A DNA stretch of 64,000 bases, from positions 124,001-188,000 of the IMG/VR virus record IMGVR_UViG_3300046660_000488; one strand, written 5' to 3'. How positions within the stretch are numbered: position 1 is the first letter of the stretch; each line of letters starts with the position of its first letter. Positions 1,849 through 26,895 of this stretch are shown piece by piece. Position numbers and translations under genes: made by a program. The notes under the pieces were generated by a model. It was not told the origin of the DNA. It did not search any database and saw nothing but the letters and a program-made list of their open reading frames with translations.

Positions 1849-2562
1849 ATGAAGATCGCAGTCATCACAGCATACTACAACGAGACGTTCGAACAACTGA
1901 TGAAGTGTCACGACAGCGTCGTGAAGCAAAGCGGAGACGTCACGCACTTCATGGTCTCGGACGGCAAGCCCCATCCCGATATTGATTACTGGAACGGCGT
2001 GGTCCACATCAAGATTCCGAACCACGGTGACTACGGTGATACGCCGCGCGGCGTTGGTTCTGCTTCAGCCGCAGCCCAAGGCTACGATGCGATCTGCTTC
2101 CTCGACGCCGACAACTGGTACGAGCCCGATCACATCGAGAACATGCTGTACGCGGTCGAGACGACCGGCGCTCAAGTCGTGACGATGGCGCGCCACATCT
2201 ACACCAAGGATTTCCGCCTGCTGGGCATGTGCCACGAATCTGACGGCCTCACGTTCAACGACACCAACTGCTACTTCATCACCCGTCCGGCCTTCCCGGC
2301 TTGCGCGGCGTGGATGTTCAAGGATCAGTCGGACGGCATCGTCGGAGACCGCCGGTTCTGGGAAGCGATCAAGACGGGCGGCTACTCGCGCGCTCACGTC
2401 GCCGCGCCGACGATCAACTACGTCTCGACGCTGGCGTTCCACTACCAGATGTTTGGCGAAACTCCGCCGGACGACTCGAAGGTGATCGTCAAGAAGACGT
2501 ATGACGAGCCGTTCACGATGGTCAGCTACGCCGAGTTCAAGAAGCTTTCCGGTCAGAGGTAG
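1849..2562 (+). CDS. GT-A (GT2-like) glycosyltransferase
   Basis: IAVITAYYNE N-terminus, VSDG, ICFLDADNW (DxD motif). Confidence 0.8.
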   Translation: MKIAVITAYYNETFEQLMKCHDSVVKQSGDVTHFMVSDGKPHPDIDYWNGVVHIKIPNHGDYGDTPRGVGSASAAAQGYDAICFLDADNWYEPDHIENMLYAVETTGAQVVTMARHIYTKDFRLLGMCHESDGLTFNDTNCYFITRPAFPACAAWMFKDQSDGIVGDRRFWEAIKTGGYSRAHVAAPTINYVSTLAFHYQMFGETPPDDSKVIVKKTYDEPFTMVSYAEFKKLSGQR

Positions 2563-3437
2563 ACGTTGTTGTCGCCTTTCAGGTAGGCGATGATGTCCTT
2601 GGCGCCGCGATAGACGCGCTTGTCGCTGTTGGTCCGGACCGTCAGGGAAATCCACGGGGCGGCCTGATAGCGGGCTGTGAACAGCAGGCGAGCGGCTTTC
2701 ATGGCGGCGGTGTCGTTCAGGGCGAACACGGTCGCCTCGTAATTCTCGCCGTTGGCGTGGACGGATACGGCCGCCCAGCCCTTCTGCTCAGCCACACCAA
2801 GGGCCTTAACGAGACTGGGGACACCGGCGACCCCGAACGTGTCCGGACTGGCCTTCAGGGCGTCGTGGTGGGTCTTGTTGATGTCGAAGGCCTTGAAGAC
2901 CTTGTCGTTGATGTTGACCCACGCCTTGTAGTCGCGCGCACGGCTCGCAGCGGCGCTCTTTGCCTGCTGGTACGTCGCGTCTGATTTACCGATCTGGTGC
3001 AGAAGGCGCGGCAGGCTGTTGATGAAGTCCCAGTCGTTGGCCGGGTTGCCGTTGAACGATTTGTGGTCGATGGCGTGAGGCTGGCCCAGCACCTTGCCGT
3101 CCATGGCGATCAGCAGCATTTTCTTGGCCGCGCCGGACATGAAGATGGCCTTGCTGTCAGGGTGCAGCAGGCTCATGGCCTTGGCCATTTCCTTGTAGAC
3201 CTTCGAATTCCCCCAGAGGTTCAGGTGAGACAGACGCTTGCCGTCGAACGCCCACAGGACGACGGGGAATTTCTGACCATCGCCGATCAGTTCGAAGATG
3301 GCCTTGCGGACGAAGTTCGGATCGCTGAAATCGTTTTTGTGGATGGTCGAATCCCCACCGGCGTAGTCCGCCCACTGCGGCTGCGTCGAGCGCTCGAACA
3401 GGGTTCGTGCAAGCGATTTCTGAATTCTTTTGGCCAT
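2553..3437 (-). CDS. Late protein, putative internal head protein
   Basis: TAAATA (3448-3443)-N5-ATG 3437 resets the start to MAKRIQKSLARTLFE; LFE motif near the N-terminus. Confidence 0.5.
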   Translation of the reverse strand: MAKRIQKSLARTLFERSTQPQWADYAGGDSTIHKNDFSDPNFVRKAIFELIGDGQKFPVVLWAFDGKRLSHLNLWGNSKVYKEMAKAMSLLHPDSKAIFMSGAAKKMLLIAMDGKVLGQPHAIDHKSFNGNPANDWDFINSLPRLLHQIGKSDATYQQAKSAAASRARDYKAWVNINDKVFKAFDINKTHHDALKASPDTFGVAGVPSLVKALGVAEQKGWAAVSVHANGENYEATVFALNDTAAMKAARLLFTARYQAAPWISLTVRTNSDKRVYRGAKDIIAYLKGDNNVYL

Positions 3438-8216: not shown

Positions 8217-8292
8217 GCGGGTGTAGCTCAATGGCTAGAGCGCTACCTTGCCGAGGTAGAGGTTGTGGGTTCGAGTCCCATCACCCGCTCCA
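8217..8292 (+). tRNA. tRNA-Gly(GCC)
   Basis: Acceptor GCGGGTG/CACCCGC, anticodon loop TTGCCGA, TTCGAG T-loop, U73, encoded CCA. Confidence 0.95.
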
Positions 8293-8325
8293 GATGTCTT
8301 AGGAACCAGTCTCCGCTACTTCCAC

Positions 8326-8400
8326 GGAGCATTCCTCTATCGGCTAAGAGACCCGGTTTTCACCCGGACAAGAGGGGTTCGATTCCCCTATGCTCTACCA
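8326..8400 (+). tRNA. tRNA-Glu(TTC)
   Basis: Acceptor GGAGCAT/ATGCTCT, loop TTTTCAC, TTCGAT T-loop, encoded CCA. Confidence 0.9.
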
Positions 8401-8402
8401 AT

Positions 8403-8477
8403 GTCTCGTTCGTATATCGGTTAGTATGCTGGACTTTCACTCCAGAGGGACGGGTTCGACTCCCGTACGAGACACCA
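8403..8477 (+). tRNA. tRNA-Glu(TTC)
   Basis: Acceptor GTCTCGT/ACGAGAC, loop CTTTCAC, encoded CCA. Confidence 0.93.
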
Positions 8478-8497
8478 AATAAAGTAAAGAAAGGTAG

Positions 8498-8528
8498 TTG
8501 ACACAGATTTCGAAGTAGAGTTTAAGAG
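8498..8528 (+). promoter_or_regulatory. Internal sigma70-type promoter in the tRNA cluster
   Basis: TTGACA, then 17-19 nt, then TTTAAG/TAAGAG in an A-rich spacer. Confidence 0.45.
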
Positions 8529-8551
8529 TAACCGAAGTATTCGACTTGCAC

Positions 8552-8626
8552 GGACCATTAGTCTATGGGTTAAGACGTTGCGTTCTCAGCGCGAAGTAAC
8601 GGGTTCGAGTCCCGTATGGTCTGCCA
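8552..8626 (+). tRNA. tRNA-Glu(CTC)
   Basis: Acceptor GGACCAT/ATGGTCT, loop TTCTCAG, encoded CCA. Confidence 0.9.
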
Positions 8627-8663
8627 AGTCTTGTATTTCACAGTATAGATGTTTCGTTGTGTT

Positions 8664-8738
8664 GGTTCTGTAGCTCAGTGGGAGAGCGTCCGGTTGTCAG
8701 CCGGAAGGTCGCGGGTTCGAAACCCGTCAGGACCGCCA
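8664..8738 (+). tRNA. tRNA-Asp(GTC)
   Basis: Acceptor GGTTCTG/CAGGACC, loop TTGTCAG, G73, encoded CCA. Confidence 0.95.
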
Positions 8739-8753
8739 TCACCAAACATCTAT

Positions 8754-8828
8754 GCGGCTGTAGCTCAGGGGTAGAGTACTGCACTGTCGATGCAGTTGTC
8801 GCGGGTTCAAATCCCGTCAGTCGCGCCA
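8754..8828 (+). tRNA. tRNA-Asp(GTC)
   Basis: Acceptor GCGGCTG/CAGTCGC, loop CTGTCGA, G73, encoded CCA. Confidence 0.93.
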
Positions 8829-8833
8829 TTTCC

Positions 8834-8854
8834 GGACCTGCTAAATACAGGTTC
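8834..8854 (+). promoter_or_regulatory. TAAATA late promoter in the loop of a hairpin between tRNA-Asp and tRNA-Gly
   Basis: GGACCTG-c-TAAATA-CAGGTTC. Confidence 0.55.
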
Positions 8855-8857
8855 AAT

Positions 8858-8932
8858 GCGGGTATAGCACAGTGGTAGTGCGTCAGCTTGCCAAGCTGAA
8901 GGTCGTCGGTTCGAACCCGACTACCCGCTCCA
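8858..8932 (+). tRNA. tRNA-Gly(GCC)
   Basis: Acceptor GCGGGTA/TACCCGC, loop TTGCCAA, U73, encoded CCA. Confidence 0.95.
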
Positions 8933-8950
8933 GTTTTCGCACTTCAGTGC

Positions 8951-9024
8951 GCGGGTATAGCATAGTGGTAATGCAGCAGCCTTCCAAGCTGAGTAGCGGG
9001 GTTCGATTCCCCGTACCCGCTCCA
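8951..9024 (+). tRNA. tRNA-Gly(TCC)
   Basis: Acceptor GCGGGTA/TACCCGC, loop CTTCCAA, U73, encoded CCA. Confidence 0.95.

Positions 9025-22603: not shown

Positions 22604-22607
<4 letters not shown>
22179..22607 (+). CDS. Hypothetical coiled-coil protein
   Basis: Ala/Lys-rich helical sequence; coupled. Confidence 0.6.
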
Positions 22608-23955
<1,348 letters not shown>

Positions 23956-23971
<16 letters not shown>

Positions 23972-24324
23972 ACTACGTCCCCGACGCGGTGACGATCACG
24001 AGCGTGCATTGGATGATGTACAATGCTTGTTTCGACCTGACTGACGCTCAGATCATCGACCTGTTCCAAAAGTCGGGCAAGCTGCGGGCCATCGTGGCTG
24101 AGGATTACTCGGACCTCACGGAGCCAACGACGTGGGACACCGATCAGATGGAGCAGATGCTTCAGGAATTCGCGGTCCACATCCTCGACCTTCCCGGCTG
24201 GCCGAACAACGGCGAGCGGGCCAGAGCCACGGAATCGGCCTGCATCTTCGACCAGACCATGCGCGACAGAATCGCGGATGGCACGGTCATCGACGAAGGC
24301 TGGTTGGAGCATGCCGATGATTGA
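23956..24324 (+). CDS. Hypothetical protein
   Basis: Overlapping ORF with GTG start. Confidence 0.55.
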
Positions 24325-24613
24325 GATCGTTCCCGAAGGCATCCGGCCTGAATTCGCGAAGATCGAGGACGTCCAGTTGGTCGTCACCACCTTCGGCGGC
24401 AAGACTCCCACGACGCTTGGTATCCGCGTCACGTTCTCTCGGGAAGACCCCGAAGACGAACCCATCGTTCGCGACTATGAACTGTTCCAACCGAACCTGT
24501 TCATGGACGCGCGCTTCCTTCACCCGATTCCGGATTCCGTCGAAGACTACCGGTATCGTGAAGTCACCATTCTCTGGAATGGCGACAAAATCCTACGTAT
24601 CAAGGGGTCCTAA
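24317..24613 (+). CDS. Hypothetical protein
   Basis: GGAG SD; coupled. Confidence 0.55.
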   Translation: MIEIVPEGIRPEFAKIEDVQLVVTTFGGKTPTTLGIRVTFSREDPEDEPIVRDYELFQPNLFMDARFLHPIPDSVEDYRYREVTILWNGDKILRIKGS

Positions 24614-24614
24614 C

Positions 24615-25016
24615 ATGGCTGAGAAGAACACTCCCAATCCAGTTGACGTCCACGTCGGCGCGCGCGTCCGCTACATGCGGAAGGCTCTGGGCATGTCCCA
24701 GACCGAACTGGCCGACGCGCTGGGCCTGACGTTCCAGCAAGTCCAGAAGTACGAACTGGGCACGAACCGCGTCAGCGCTTCGAAGCTGTACGAGATCGCC
24801 AAGAAGATGAAGGTCACCATCGGCTTCTTCTTCGAAGGCCTCGAAGCGACGCAGGGCGACAACAACGACGCCGCCGTCAAGATCGACCGGAACCTGAACG
24901 AAGCCATGGCCGTCATGATCGACGTCCCGTCGTTGATGTCCCTGTCGAAGCTGTCGCGTCCCAAGCTCGTCATCGTCGGCAATCTTGTCGAGTCGATGAT
25001 CGGCGAAGCCGCTTAA
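24615..25016 (+). CDS. XRE/Cro-C1 helix-turn-helix regulator, alphaproteobacterial type
   Basis: PNPVDVHVGARVR..R..LGMSQ..LA..LGLTFQQVQKYE.G.NRVSAS.L. Confidence 0.92.
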   Translation: MAEKNTPNPVDVHVGARVRYMRKALGMSQTELADALGLTFQQVQKYELGTNRVSASKLYEIAKKMKVTIGFFFEGLEATQGDNNDAAVKIDRNLNEAMAVMIDVPSLMSLSKLSRPKLVIVGNLVESMIGEAA

Positions 25017-26038
25017 GCTGCTCCAGCCTGCGCGCGAAGTTTCTCGTTGATCTTCGCGCGCATGGCACGATCCCATTCGGGCACGCGGTCGTACTGGTGC
25101 ACGATGGGATAGAGTTCGTCGTCCTCTGCGGACGCGAACACCTCTCCATCCCGCAGGACGGGCTCAGGGCACAACAGGTTCGGCCGGAAGGCGTCGATCT
25201 TGTTGGGGTCCGCAGTCGTGCCCGCTTGGCAGACGACGCCGTCGTCGTGGCGCCCGAACCGGGTGATGCTCGACCATGCGGCCATGTCGAGCAGGATGTT
25301 GTAGCCGCTCTGGTCGGCCACGCCGTATCCCGACGACTTGGCGATCATGCCAACGCTCAGACACATGTCGGCCACGGTCTGGGCCGATCCCAGCAAGACG
25401 CCGACATTGTAGATTTCCTTGTCCATGACGCGGTCGGCGAGCGATGGGTAACCCGCCTTCACGTTGTCGCATCCCCACGGCTCGTCGCGGTAGCTCAGAC
25501 CTTCGGCCGCCGCGTATAGCTGGTACTCTCCCTCGCCGTCGTCCAGCCAGCGCTCCAGCGCCAGCGACGGGTTGGACTGGAAGGCCACATCGCGGATGTC
25601 GGTGACGATGGCGAACCGCAGGCTATGGGGGTTCTCGTCGTCGCTCAGCCCGTCGATGTGGTTGATGATTTCGTGGAAATCATAGAAGCGCGCATTGAAG
25701 ATCGACTGCGGCATCGGCTTGACGAAGAGCATGAAGCCCAGCGCGTTCAGTCGCTTGATGACGTCGAGGTTGTTCTTCGTGGCTGGCGGCAGATCGTTGT
25801 CTACCTGCGGGAGACCTCCTGTGTCGCGGATGCTCGCGGCCAACAGGCTGTCGTAGATGATGACGGCTTTCTTGCCCTCGAAACCGGAGGTCACTAGGCT
25901 CAGCGCCCAGACTTCGATCTTGGACCAGTCGTAGCCACCGGCTGCTGCGAGAACAAGATCGTTCTTGCGCTCGATGACGTTCATTTCTTCAAGGATCGCG
26001 CCAAATTTGACGATCACGTCTTCTTCACTGGGCATCAA
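25013..26038 (-). CDS. Putative GT-A glycosyltransferase
   Basis: YDWSKIEVW..SL..SGFEG, RF, VTDIRDVAFQSNP, NVGVLLG, DQ..YN. Confidence 0.65.
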   Translation of the reverse strand: MMPSEEDVIVKFGAILEEMNVIERKNDLVLAAAGGYDWSKIEVWALSLVTSGFEGKKAVIIYDSLLAASIRDTGGLPQVDNDLPPATKNNLDVIKRLNALGFMLFVKPMPQSIFNARFYDFHEIINHIDGLSDDENPHSLRFAIVTDIRDVAFQSNPSLALERWLDDGEGEYQLYAAAEGLSYRDEPWGCDNVKAGYPSLADRVMDKEIYNVGVLLGSAQTVADMCLSVGMIAKSSGYGVADQSGYNILLDMAAWSSITRFGRHDDGVVCQAGTTADPNKIDAFRPNLLCPEPVLRDGEVFASAEDDELYPIVHQYDRVPEWDRAMRAKINEKLRAQAGAA

Positions 26039-26065
26039 ATATGGTCCAAAAATGAATTAAGTAAC

Positions 26066-26295
26066 GCAAGTGGAGGAAGACTAAGACGACAACGAAATGC
26101 GAAGCACGAACCTCGAAATACGAAGAACGACATGCCTTGAGCCCGGTAACGAAGAACGATAGTCTCCCGAAGGAAACAGGGGGTTGTTTGCCGGGTAACG
26201 AGGCTGGTGCTTTTACGGAGTCATGCGCTCGTAAGCGAATGACAATGCCTTAATCTATCCTCCACTCACGCCGCCCGTCCGAAGACAGGCGTGTC
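26066..26295 (-). ncRNA. Candidate structured ncRNA of about 230 nt
   Basis: Closing stem 26069-26085/26249-26266, nested stems, two cUUCGg tetraloops and G-U pairs only on the minus strand; no ORF. Confidence 0.65.
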
Positions 26296-26304
26296 CTCGC
26301 TCCC

Positions 26305-26895
26305 CTAGAGCAGCGAGTATTTCTCCACCAAGGCCGCGACGAACGCCGGGATGACAATCCGGGTCGAGCCGTTGATGATTTCGATCTGGTCGGCGATGGC
26401 CACTTTCTGGCGCCGAATGTCGTTCAGCGACTTGGCGGTGGCCTCGGCCGTCGCTTCGTCCACCAGTGCGACCGACAGAGACTCCGGCGCGCGGCTGTAG
26501 CGATCCGTCGCGGGCTGCGAGGCGCGCTTTTCAGCGGCCTCCAGTTGGCGGACGATGATCTTCACGTCCTGCGCGGTGACGTCCTTGCCAATCGTGCCGT
26601 AGATGGTCTCCATCTTGCGGAGCGATTCGGACTGACGCAGCAGGTCCGGAATACCGGCGCGCTCGTTGGCCTCGCCACGGGCGTTGTGCAGGGTGTTGAT
26701 GGCCTCGACCAGCGCAAGCTTTTCAGTCTGCGACTCGATCATCTTGGCTTGCGCGTCGGCCAGCGCAGCCTTCACGGACGCTTCGTCCTTGTCGTCGTAG
26801 ATCGACAGGGTGGCGCTGGTGGTGATCTGAACTTCGGCGGCCTTCCGCTCAAGAAGCTTCTCGATCTGGTACGCCTTGCGAAGGGTCACTTCCAT
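26305..26895 (-). CDS. Coiled-coil hypothetical protein
   Basis: MEVTLRKAY start; long amphipathic helices. Confidence 0.7.
   Translation of the reverse strand: MEVTLRKAYQIEKLLERKAAEVQITTSATLSIYDDKDEASVKAALADAQAKMIESQTEKLALVEAINTLHNARGEANERAGIPDLLRQSESLRKMETIYGTIGKDVTAQDVKIIVRQLEAAEKRASQPATDRYSRAPESLSVALVDEATAEATAKSLNDIRRQKVAIADQIEIINGSTRIVIPAFVAALVEKYSLL

Follow-up and report, generated by a model that had tools for sequence, protein, structure and literature searches.

What does the gap between two minus-strand genes of a very large phage encode, if anything? The gap was noticed in a window of 64,000 nucleotides, which is positions 124,001 to 188,000 of the IMG/VR virus record IMGVR_UViG_3300046660_000488. 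It lies behind the gene of a 196-aa protein (26305-26895, minus strand, stop codon at 26305-26307) and before the ATG (26033-26035) of a 340-aa gene (25013-26035, minus strand), and no ORF of 40 aa or more overlaps it on either strand. The original prediction read it as a new multibranched non-coding RNA, perhaps an RNP with the coiled-coil protein whose repeats are protein-binding sites, or alternatively as a riboswitch-like leader. Our results confirm and extend the observation, and they support the reading as a new non-coding RNA. The gap encodes a previously undescribed structured RNA of about 210 nt, which many very large phages carry directly behind one conserved helical-protein gene and which, judged from assembled contigs, accumulates as a discrete RNA in a related phage, though its function is unknown.

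In fact, every feature named in the original prediction is found in the sequence, at or within a few bases of the predicted positions. The closing helix of 9 bp (26258-26266 with 26069-26077) extends through G.U pairs to 15 bp, so that P1 is formed by a purine-rich 5' strand at 26258-26272 (GGCGUGAGUGGAGGA) and a 3' strand at 26063-26077 (UCCUCCACUUGCGUU) with 11 Watson-Crick and 4 G.U pairs. It is continued by the 8-bp P1b, containing one U.G pair, between 26249-26256 (AGAUUAAG) and 26078-26085 (CUUAGUCU), and the two together make about 23 bp of near-continuous duplex; an equivalent second helix is seen in relatives, for example in L016 (L numbers denote the homologous loci). The element proper, from closing helix to closing helix, is thus 26063-26272 on the minus strand (210 nt). 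Inside it lie a 5' hairpin at 26220-26243 (GUCAU...AUGAC with an inner CGCU/AGCG stem), which occupies the position of a lineage-variable hairpin in the family alignments, and an apical hairpin at 26162-26177 (GUUUCC-UUCG-GGAGAC), with UUCG-capped hairpins at the same place in relatives such as L016 and L018. Another 8-bp GC-rich hairpin with a UUCG loop is located at 26272-26291, between the stop codon and the closing helix; it has no U-tract and is not a canonical terminator, and one or two similar hairpins occupy this position in the high-GC relatives. On the other side, a pyrimidine-rich tail, a GGA ribosome-binding site and the ATG of the next gene follow at 26033-26062, a layout also seen in relatives.

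Such a fold is more than chance. RNAfold gives -98.3 kcal/mol against -77.6 +/- 4.7 for dinucleotide shuffles (z = -4.42, with 0 of 200 shuffles as good), while the opposite strand gives only z = -2.36. The long-range helix scores 31, whereas the maximum is 27.5 in 56 other long intergenic stretches of the same genome, and shuffled member regions score 18.9 +/- 3.0. Moreover, no Rfam 15 family matches it. The window at gathering threshold gives only 8 tRNAs, the region 25900-26450 at E <= 10 gives only two chance hits of 10-14 bits, and in 11 related loci only tRNAs and one freshwater-2 motif match, all elsewhere in those loci. Literature searches found no description of this RNA.

To see whether the element is inherited with its neighbour, we looked for relatives through the upstream protein. 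Pattern scans of viral contigs with either flanking protein found nothing, a word-index search found only the window's own coiled-coil protein, and blastn of the RNA finds no relatives because the primary sequence is too diverged; homologs appeared only through tblastn on neighbours' loci and an exhaustive profile search, and a metagenome scan added only two loci. The protein, predicted to be all-helical (AF2 model pLDDT 95), belongs to a large, unnamed phage family with 1489 representatives at 50% identity, whose alignment begins at M1, and the conserved N-terminus MEVTLRKA fixes the ATG at 26895. Homologs of 24-35% identity are each followed by an unannotated gap of about 285-320 nt with the same layout, namely in L002, L004, L006, L007, L009 and L011-L013, in the cultured phages CcrColossus, CcrPW, Kabachok, Gurke, Kikimora, Bambus, Domovoi and fHe-Yen9-04 (jumbo phages of Caulobacter, Brevundimonas and Yersinia are among the loci), and in the IMG/VR loci L022-L039. 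In about 26 distinct loci the gene is followed on the same strand by the same element of roughly 200-270 nt, and 25 of 27 distinct loci have a perfect 9-16 bp helix spanning 206-266 nt with lineage-specific sequence, the median helix score being 31. However, the linkage is not absolute, since in PA5oct a true member of the protein family is followed by a glutaredoxin-like ORF and no evident RNA.

The covariation of the element is strong. MAFFT on all diverse cores aligns the 5' half poorly, and the test therefore used a sequence-only MAFFT alignment of 13 closer sequences. For three helices, 95.2% of cells are paired, against 48-58% when partners are slid, 19 of 26 pairs show double changes, and 0 of 500 shuffles reach the observed values. 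P1 is among the covarying helices, and G.U pairs sit at its base in most members, which would be A.C on the other strand. A covariance model (R1) built without the window finds the window copy full-length at 26051-26276 on the minus strand (model positions 1-246, 22 bits, E 1.9e-5), and it hits L004 at 7e-6. The element is present once per genome in the five whole records where the model could be tested; but R1 does not detect AT-rich members such as L045 and L023-L037, or gives only partial hits, and its search of the window's whole genome returned nothing although the window search did, so that absence calls with R1, including for PA5oct, mean little.

These comparisons also bear on the interior helices. 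CCCGG at 26191-26195 pairs with CCGGG at 26142-26146 and is placed by the model alignment in the family P3b, of which 5 of 6 pairs are compensatory. The P3a 5' strand (26199-26206) has two exclusive readings: CCUCG (26199-26203) pairs with CGAGG at 26111-26115 in the minimum free energy fold and in the original prediction, while CAGCCU (26201-26206) pairs with AGGCAUG at 26131-26137 in the family alignment. AAGCAC at 26207-26212, pairing with GUGCUU at 26102-26107, is the probable equivalent of a tentative P2 (xxCAC/GUGxx), which lies at a constant position with different sequences in 8 relatives, for example AAAGCAC/GUGCUUU in L011; however, per-sequence shuffles of P2 were not significant, and neither P2 nor the interior junctions are statistically established.

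The 11-nt direct repeat of the original prediction, TCGTTCTTCGT at 26120-26130 and 26149-26159, is part of a family-wide array with a 7-nt period. The upstream copy (26147-26162, CUAUCGUUCUUCGUUA) is aligned to the conserved UUGUUCGUUG block 5' of the P3b 3' strand, and the array itself lies at 26087-26134, reading CAUGUCG, UUCUUCG, UAUUUCG, AGGUUCG, UGCUUCG, CAUUUCG and UUGUCG. A G recurs every 7 nt and is preceded by UC, the family consensus being YNNKUUG; 8 in-phase units are counted in the window and their Gs align to the invariant Gs of the family. Across the family there are 4-9 units, each with four free spacer bases and a conserved YYG triplet (UUG; UCG in the window). At least 5 in-phase units occur in 20 of 24 sequences (shuffle P = 0.067 each), with U 79%, U 78% and G at positions 5-7. 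The counts of YYG triplets at lags 7, 14 and 21 are 102, 83 and 60, against about 15, 13.5 and 12 expected (z = 21.9, 19.1 and 13.6), and the 5' halves show no such peak. The Fourier power of G occupancy showed no 7-nt peak; the periodicity is clear only for the triplets, and the Yersinia phage copy has 8-nt rather than 7-nt spacing. In the window, part of the array can pair with the 5' half (AAGCAC/GUGCUU, CCUCG/CGAGG), and therefore it may not be single-stranded.

Is the element an RNA in the cell? The only runs holding the window are DNA, and the evidence comes from assembled contigs of one relative (L023) rather than from mapped 5' and 3' ends. In four RNA-seq runs from three studies, whole contigs of 174, 202, 171 and 159 nt cover only L023 1804-2029, where P1 is 1817-2029, and two of them end at or 2 nt short of the last base of the P1 3' strand. 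Depth is zero on the helical-protein gene in all four runs and on the start of the downstream gene; the only other matches are short partial contig pieces at 964-1132 (run X6, flagged as probably DNA) and at 2231-2270 (runs X4 and X6). The natural variants of these contigs fall in unpaired positions or keep pairs, with one exception. None of the three outcomes that would have contradicted the original prediction, an Rfam match, absent covariation or absent discrete RNA, occurred. A DNA-level element (origin, iterons, packaging or recombination site) or a chance structure could be imagined from the short direct repeats and the long inverted repeat, but it is very unlikely in view of the one-strand G.U pairs, the strand asymmetry of the fold, the helix scores, the compensatory changes across lineages and the RNA-only coverage; moreover, a 7-nt period does not match the DNA helical repeat.

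The riboswitch-like or other cis-regulatory leader is likewise disfavoured and very unlikely. The element is a large conserved multibranched fold lying 27 nt upstream of the next start codon, yet the downstream gene is not conserved: it is an enzyme-like 285-340-aa gene in the window and L004, unrelated small ORFs in L002, L006, L011-L013 and Dolichocephalovirinae, or tRNA genes in L007, L028, L034 and L045. In the window this gene, called a glycosyltransferase in the original prediction, has no Pfam hit and its homologs are mostly unnamed. The ribosome-binding site and ATG lie 10-27 nt outside P1, the ribosome-binding site is not sequestered, most members have no U-tract after P1, the RNA contigs stop at P1, and no Rfam riboswitch matches.

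A cis-acting 3'-UTR element of the helical-protein mRNA is harder to set aside, though we regard it as unlikely. It would be a processing or stability structure (an RNase III stem plus a 3' protective fold) and/or an autoregulatory operator by which the protein limits its own synthesis, as in the T4 gene 32 or ribosomal-protein operators, and the RNA would have no function of its own. The same-strand adjacency in about 26 loci, the duplex of about 23 bp as a plausible RNase III substrate, and the periodic triplets, which fit cooperative protein binding, speak for it. However, the RNA accumulates without detectable mRNA of the protein gene in the four runs, a conserved and covarying interior of 200 nt is far more than an end-protecting hairpin needs, and the element lies 3' of the gene, away from its ribosome-binding site. 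This reading overlaps with an RNP reading rather than excluding it.

The module lies inside or beside same-strand tRNA arrays in 8 of 9 lower-GC loci, the spacer from P1 to the tRNA is 9-10 nt in three lineages, and aminoacyl-tRNA synthetase or Thg1 genes are found beside it; in the window CysRS is next to the module, while the tRNAs are 17 kb away (8217-9024) on the other strand. We infer that the RNA is transcribed with the protein gene, and with tRNAs where these follow, and is then cut out or trimmed back to the nuclease-resistant P1 duplex, by RNase P at the tRNA 9-10 nt downstream and/or by RNase III in the stem. Phage T4 RNAC and RNAD are stable RNAs of unknown function encoded with tRNA genes and confirmed by Northern blot (PMC9697503), a placement that the present RNA has in L007, L028, L034 and L045 but not in the window; no sequence or structure relationship to them was shown, and the present RNA is larger and tied to a protein gene.

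As to its role, we infer that the scaffold presents the triplets as a multivalent binding site for an oligomeric RNA-binding protein, one triplet per subunit. HutP binds XAG triplets separated by 4-nt, sequence-independent spacers, that is with a 7-nt period, one per subunit of a ring (PMC2425495). Here the triplet is UUG/UCG/CUG and the array is embedded in a closed multibranched RNA that is stable on its own rather than in an attenuator leader; no HutP- or TRAP-like protein was detected, in so far as the neighbour has no Pfam family, the rest of the genome not having been scanned. Multivalent protein-titrating sRNAs such as CsrB/RsmZ and CrcZ offer an analogy only; their motifs appear to sit in hairpin loops at irregular spacing, while here there is a strict 7-nt phase with a different motif, no homology and no Rfam match. 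The best candidate partner is the co-inherited neighbouring protein, giving a phage RNP, but this is inferred only from gene linkage. That protein is mildly acidic (pI 5.4; family median 6.2) and has no recognisable RNA-binding domain, although R6, K7, R70, R161, R162 and K164 are conserved. Its Pfam, PHROGs and PDB sequence searches were empty, and fold searches gave only uncharacterised phage or giant-virus proteins, PDB 3kdq (unknown function, Z 10.3) and a partial DUF6847 resemblance. Taken as a whole we give this reading a probability of roughly 0.6: a real, new, stable structured ncRNA family is very likely, the array as a protein-binding platform is about an even chance, and the neighbouring protein as the partner is possible but less likely than not.

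Alternatively, the triplets could be a decoy for a host RNA-binding protein or ribonuclease, for example a defence nuclease aimed at tRNAs or an Hfq-like protein, so protecting phage tRNAs or mRNAs, with the neighbouring protein unrelated or only a helper. The multivalent array, the tRNA context and the abundance and stability of the RNA in metatranscriptomes are compatible with this, and some units read AUUUUUG, which may resemble Hfq/Sm-site sequences. Yet it seems doubtful: the hosts are very diverse (element GC 36-62%) while the RNA travels with the same phage protein, which points to a phage partner, and we know of no host factor with a 7-nt-spaced UUG preference. A type III toxin-antitoxin RNA, with tandem repeats of about 34-40 nt next to an endoribonuclease toxin gene, does not fit either, as the repeat unit is 7 nt and the neighbouring proteins have no Pfam or PHROG match, although the defence library PADLOC was not searched. 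Y RNAs (YrlA) with Ro60 share a closing stem with a multibranched body and occur in phages, and CcrColossus has a Ro60 homolog and a Y-like RNA (PMC12135203); however, TROVE/Ro60 (PF05731) is absent from the window's genome and from a further genome (G001), it lies far from the element in CcrColossus (about 93 kb) and Kabachok, and no Y RNA model matches. The phi29 pRNA is also a phage-encoded structured RNA, one that works with phage proteins, and one member of the neighbouring protein family is virion-associated in PA5oct, but the Rfam pRNA family does not match, the size, fold and genomic place differ, and no link to the packaging motor was shown. A scaffold-protein reading was rejected, the CcrColossus major capsid gene (gp81) being far from gp272, the neighbouring protein there.

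A more speculative and unlikely possibility is that the RNA and protein form a phage ribonucleoprotein of a kind not yet described, in which several copies of the helical protein would assemble along the array on a rigid RNA scaffold. The particle would either be carried in the virion, considering the virion-associated PA5oct member and that the RNA turns up without flanking DNA in wastewater RNA libraries, or act on the phage's own tRNA pool, for example by guarding or handling tRNAs against host tRNA-directed defences, considering the tRNA arrays with a fixed 9-10-nt spacer.

Jumbo and huge phages carry many genes of unknown function and few known non-coding RNAs. This locus defines a widespread pair of a structured RNA and a conserved protein gene, neither of which belongs to a described family, and which occurs in cultured, genetically tractable systems such as Caulobacter phage CcrColossus, Brevundimonas phages and Yersinia phage fHe-Yen9-04. 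The RNA has an unusually clear anatomy, with covarying helices and a strictly phased triplet array, so that hypotheses about protein binding can be tested directly. Its recurrent placement in tRNA arrays and beside phage aaRS and Thg1 genes suggests a role near tRNA or translation, and a link to the phage translation toolkit. What is new is the family, while the mechanism may turn out to resemble known multivalent protein-binding RNAs.

The window is bases 124001-188000 of a 578,292-bp virus record with direct terminal repeats and 59% GC, that is, a huge phage. On its minus strand, the gene of the 196-aa helical protein ends at 26305-26307 and the next gene starts at 26035, and the 269-nt gap between them holds no ORF of 40 aa or more on either strand. 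All the helices, the tetraloops and the 11-nt repeat named in the original prediction, which proposed a multibranched RNA in this gap, are indeed present where it placed them. The gap folds better than shuffles, with a fold energy of -98.3 kcal/mol and z = -4.42 against dinucleotide shuffles, while the plus strand gives only z = -2.36. Moreover, the closing helix is longer than originally predicted, with 15 bp (26258-26272 with 26063-26077) plus 8 bp (26249-26256 with 26078-85), and its score of 31 exceeds every one of 56 other long intergenic stretches of the same genome, whose maximum is 27.5. No Rfam 15 family matches the element, even at E <= 10, and literature searches, which did not cover subscription-only papers, found no prior description of it.

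The element is conserved and travels with one protein gene. A word-index search saw no relatives of the 196-aa protein; however, loci fetched through the downstream gene turned out to encode 29-35% identical homologs of it, each followed by a gap of about 300 nt, and a profile search then found 1489 representatives at E <= 0.001, nearly all of 180-210 aa. The family has no Pfam, PHROG or PDB sequence match. Its members occur in cultured jumbo phages, namely the Caulobacter phages CcrColossus (gp272) and CcrPW, seven Brevundimonas vB_BpoS phages, Yersinia phage fHe-Yen9-04 (g381) and, by profile comparison, Pseudomonas phage PA5oct (gp180), as well as in many IMG/VR contigs of 100-560 kb. In every cultured phage except PA5oct the gene is followed by an unannotated same-strand gap of 284-315 nt. 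In PA5oct the gene (EST35_0180, 2501-3064 of the fetched locus) is a true member of the family (hhalign 98.8%), but it is followed by a glutaredoxin-like ORF and no evident RNA.

The genes beyond the gap differ between phages: there is an enzyme-like 285-340-aa gene in the window and in the related locus L004, while other phages have unrelated small ORFs or tRNA genes. The role of a leader of the downstream gene is very unlikely. In the window this gene (25013-26035, minus strand), which the original prediction called a glycosyltransferase, has no Pfam match; it has 232 mostly unnamed homologs, including some in Nocardia, and only two of them are fused to a Glycos_transf_2 domain.

In 25 of 27 distinct loci a perfect 9-16 bp helix spans 206-266 nt, and its 5' strand is purine-rich and its sequence lineage-specific, for example GGCGUGAGUGGAGGA, GGGUGAAAGUGGG, GGGGUGGAAGCGG, GGGGCGGGGACGGAAG, GAGAGAUAGAGAG and CGAAAAGAAAGAG. 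The median helix score is 31 against 18.9 +/- 3.0 for shuffles, and each of nine positions shows 3-5 pair types. A sequence-only MAFFT alignment of 13 members, folded with RNAalifold, gives the closing helix P1 (14 bp) and two inner helices, P3a (6 bp) and P3b (6 bp), where the latter two are separated by a sequence-conserved internal loop, CUUGCUG opposite UUGUU. Although these 13 sequences fall into only a few lineages, 95.2% of cells in the alignment are paired, against 48-58% when the 3' partners are slid by 1-3 columns, 19 of 26 pairs have changes on both sides, and 0 of 500 shuffles reach the observed values. G.U pairs are frequent at the base of P1, so the structure belongs to the strand that is sense for the protein gene. 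A DNA element and chance are each very unlikely as explanations. A further helix, P2 (xxCAC/GUGxx), sits at a constant position with varying sequence in eight members, but it is not significant per sequence and is therefore only tentative.

A covariance model (R1) was then built from those 13 sequences, without the window. It finds the window copy full-length on the minus strand (26051-26276, 22 bits, E 1.9e-5), finds L004 at E 6.9e-6, and finds exactly one copy in each of five whole phage records, though it is insensitive to AT-rich members. For example in Yersinia phage fHe-Yen9-04, the gap after g381 (3080-3378 of locus L045) has a 12-bp long-range helix (3125-3136 with 3320-3331) and is followed by tRNA-Thr, yet R1 misses it. 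In the window the model aligns CCCGG/CCGGG to P3b and GCCU/AGGC to P3a, while the minimum-energy fold instead uses the CCUCG/CGAGG and AAGCAC/GUGCUU helices of the original prediction; these two readings exclude each other, and it is still uncertain which one holds.

It is notable that the alignment shows invariant Gs exactly 7 nt apart in the 3' part of the element. Every one of 24 sequences has at least 4 consecutive in-phase units and 20 have at least 5, where the shuffle probability of 5 or more is 0.067 per sequence. The unit reads Y-N-N-K-U-U-G, with 79% U and 78% U before the G. Pairs of YYG triplets at lags 7, 14 and 21 number 102, 83 and 60, against about 15, 13.5 and 12 expected (z = 21.9, 19.1 and 13.6), while the 5' halves show no such peaks. 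There is also variation across lineages: the window has eight in-phase units and uses UCG, the last six running UGUCG, UUCUUCG, UAUUUCG, AGGUUCG, UGCUUCG and CAUUUCG; the Gurke/Kikimora lineage uses CUG or GUG; and the UUG repeats of the Yersinia phage copy are spaced 8 nt rather than 7. Conserved triplets with free 4-nt spacers mark sequence-specific recognition rather than a helix, and the closest documented case is HutP, whose sites are XAG triplets with four sequence-independent spacer bases, bound by subunits of a ring (PMC2425495).

As for expression, no RNA run holds the window. However, for the relative L023, four RNA-seq runs from three studies contain short whole contigs of 174, 202, 171 and 159 nt; the samples are a freshwater metatranscriptome, a wastewater metatranscriptome and two wastewater RNA-seq libraries, one of which (X6) is flagged as probably DNA. 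These contigs cover only 1804-2029, where P1 of the element is 1817-2029, and they end at 2029, 2027, 1958 and 2019. Depth is zero on the protein gene (1201-1764) in all four runs and on the start of the downstream gene, though short partial contig pieces also lie at 964-1132 (X6) and 2231-2270 (runs X4 and X6). Contaminating DNA would cover the flanks as well, so this is RNA. The variants in these contigs lie in unpaired positions or keep pairs (G.U to A-U, C-G to U.G, A-U to G.U), with one exception. Altogether, although the evidence is from assembled contigs, this shows a discrete, comparatively stable RNA for a family member, while the window's own copy is inferred by homology. In L023, a match to the Rfam freshwater-2 motif (RF02980, 55.6 bits) also lies at 2635-2707, about 600 nt downstream of the RNA element.

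The genomic context repeatedly brings the module close to translation genes. In the related loci L007 and L034 the protein gene and the RNA lie inside same-strand tRNA arrays, in L028, L034 and L007, which are three different lineages, a tRNA starts 9-10 nt after the last base of P1, and L045, L010, L027, L030 and L036 have tRNAs nearby. The array of L007 includes a tRNA with anticodon CUA at 3088-3162 (amber-reading; labelled tRNA-Pyl by ARAGORN), which may hint at stop-codon suppression or recoding in that phage. In the high-GC huge phages the neighbours include Thg1, CysRS and a class Ib aaRS. In the window, a phage-encoded cysteinyl-tRNA synthetase (22604-23971, plus strand; PF01406, 385 bits), 1 kb away, and an HTH_3 protein (24321-25016, plus strand) converge on the module, and the same genes neighbour it in the loci L002, L004 and L006. 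The tRNA cluster of the window is 17 kb away (8217-9024, plus strand) and consists of eight tRNA genes restricted to Gly (GCC x2, UCC), Glu (UUC x2, CUC) and Asp (GUC x2). The element is not the Ro60-associated Y RNA known from CcrColossus (PMC12135203): TROVE is absent from the window's genome and from a second genome, G001, and in CcrColossus it lies about 93 kb from this element. The authors of the CcrColossus genome reported that Rfam found no RNA other than tRNAs (PMC3556154).

For the neighbouring protein, AlphaFold2 with 69 homologs gives a confident all-helical model with a small two-strand sheet joining the termini (pLDDT 95). Fold searches return only uncharacterised proteins of phages (CcrColossus, Erwinia pEa_SNUABM_47, Vibrio Vp_R1) and of Klosneuvirinae, one solved protein of unknown function (3kdq, Z 10.3) and a partial DUF6847 resemblance; the structural relatives found in BFVD include proteins of giant eukaryotic viruses rich in translation genes, namely Catovirus and Yasminevirus (TM 0.62-0.64). 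The protein is mildly acidic (pI 5.4), but it keeps the basic residues R6, K7, R70, R161, R162 and K164, except that the window's protein (26305-26895, minus strand) has His at residue 70 where 99% of the family has Arg. Although the window's RNA is also unusual in using UCG instead of UUG triplets, L004 has UCG-type units with Arg, so no clear correlation emerges. Moreover, PA5oct gp180 is flagged in its record as detected by virion mass spectrometry (preprint 10.1101/679506).

To sum up, our analysis revealed a conserved, covarying and strand-specific RNA fold with a phased triplet array, linked strictly to one protein gene apart from the case of PA5oct, and accumulating as a discrete RNA in a relative. 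From these results we infer that the RNA is co-transcribed with the protein gene and with downstream tRNAs, and that its ends are defined by the duplex of P1 and the adjoining 8-bp helix P1b, through RNase P at the tRNA plus trimming, or through RNase III. A purely cis role for the protein's mRNA is possible and overlaps with the idea of an RNP. The triplet array is likewise inferred to serve as a multivalent site for an oligomeric protein; a host factor is the main alternative as its partner, while most simply, though only tentatively and at less than even odds, the partner is the co-inherited neighbour.
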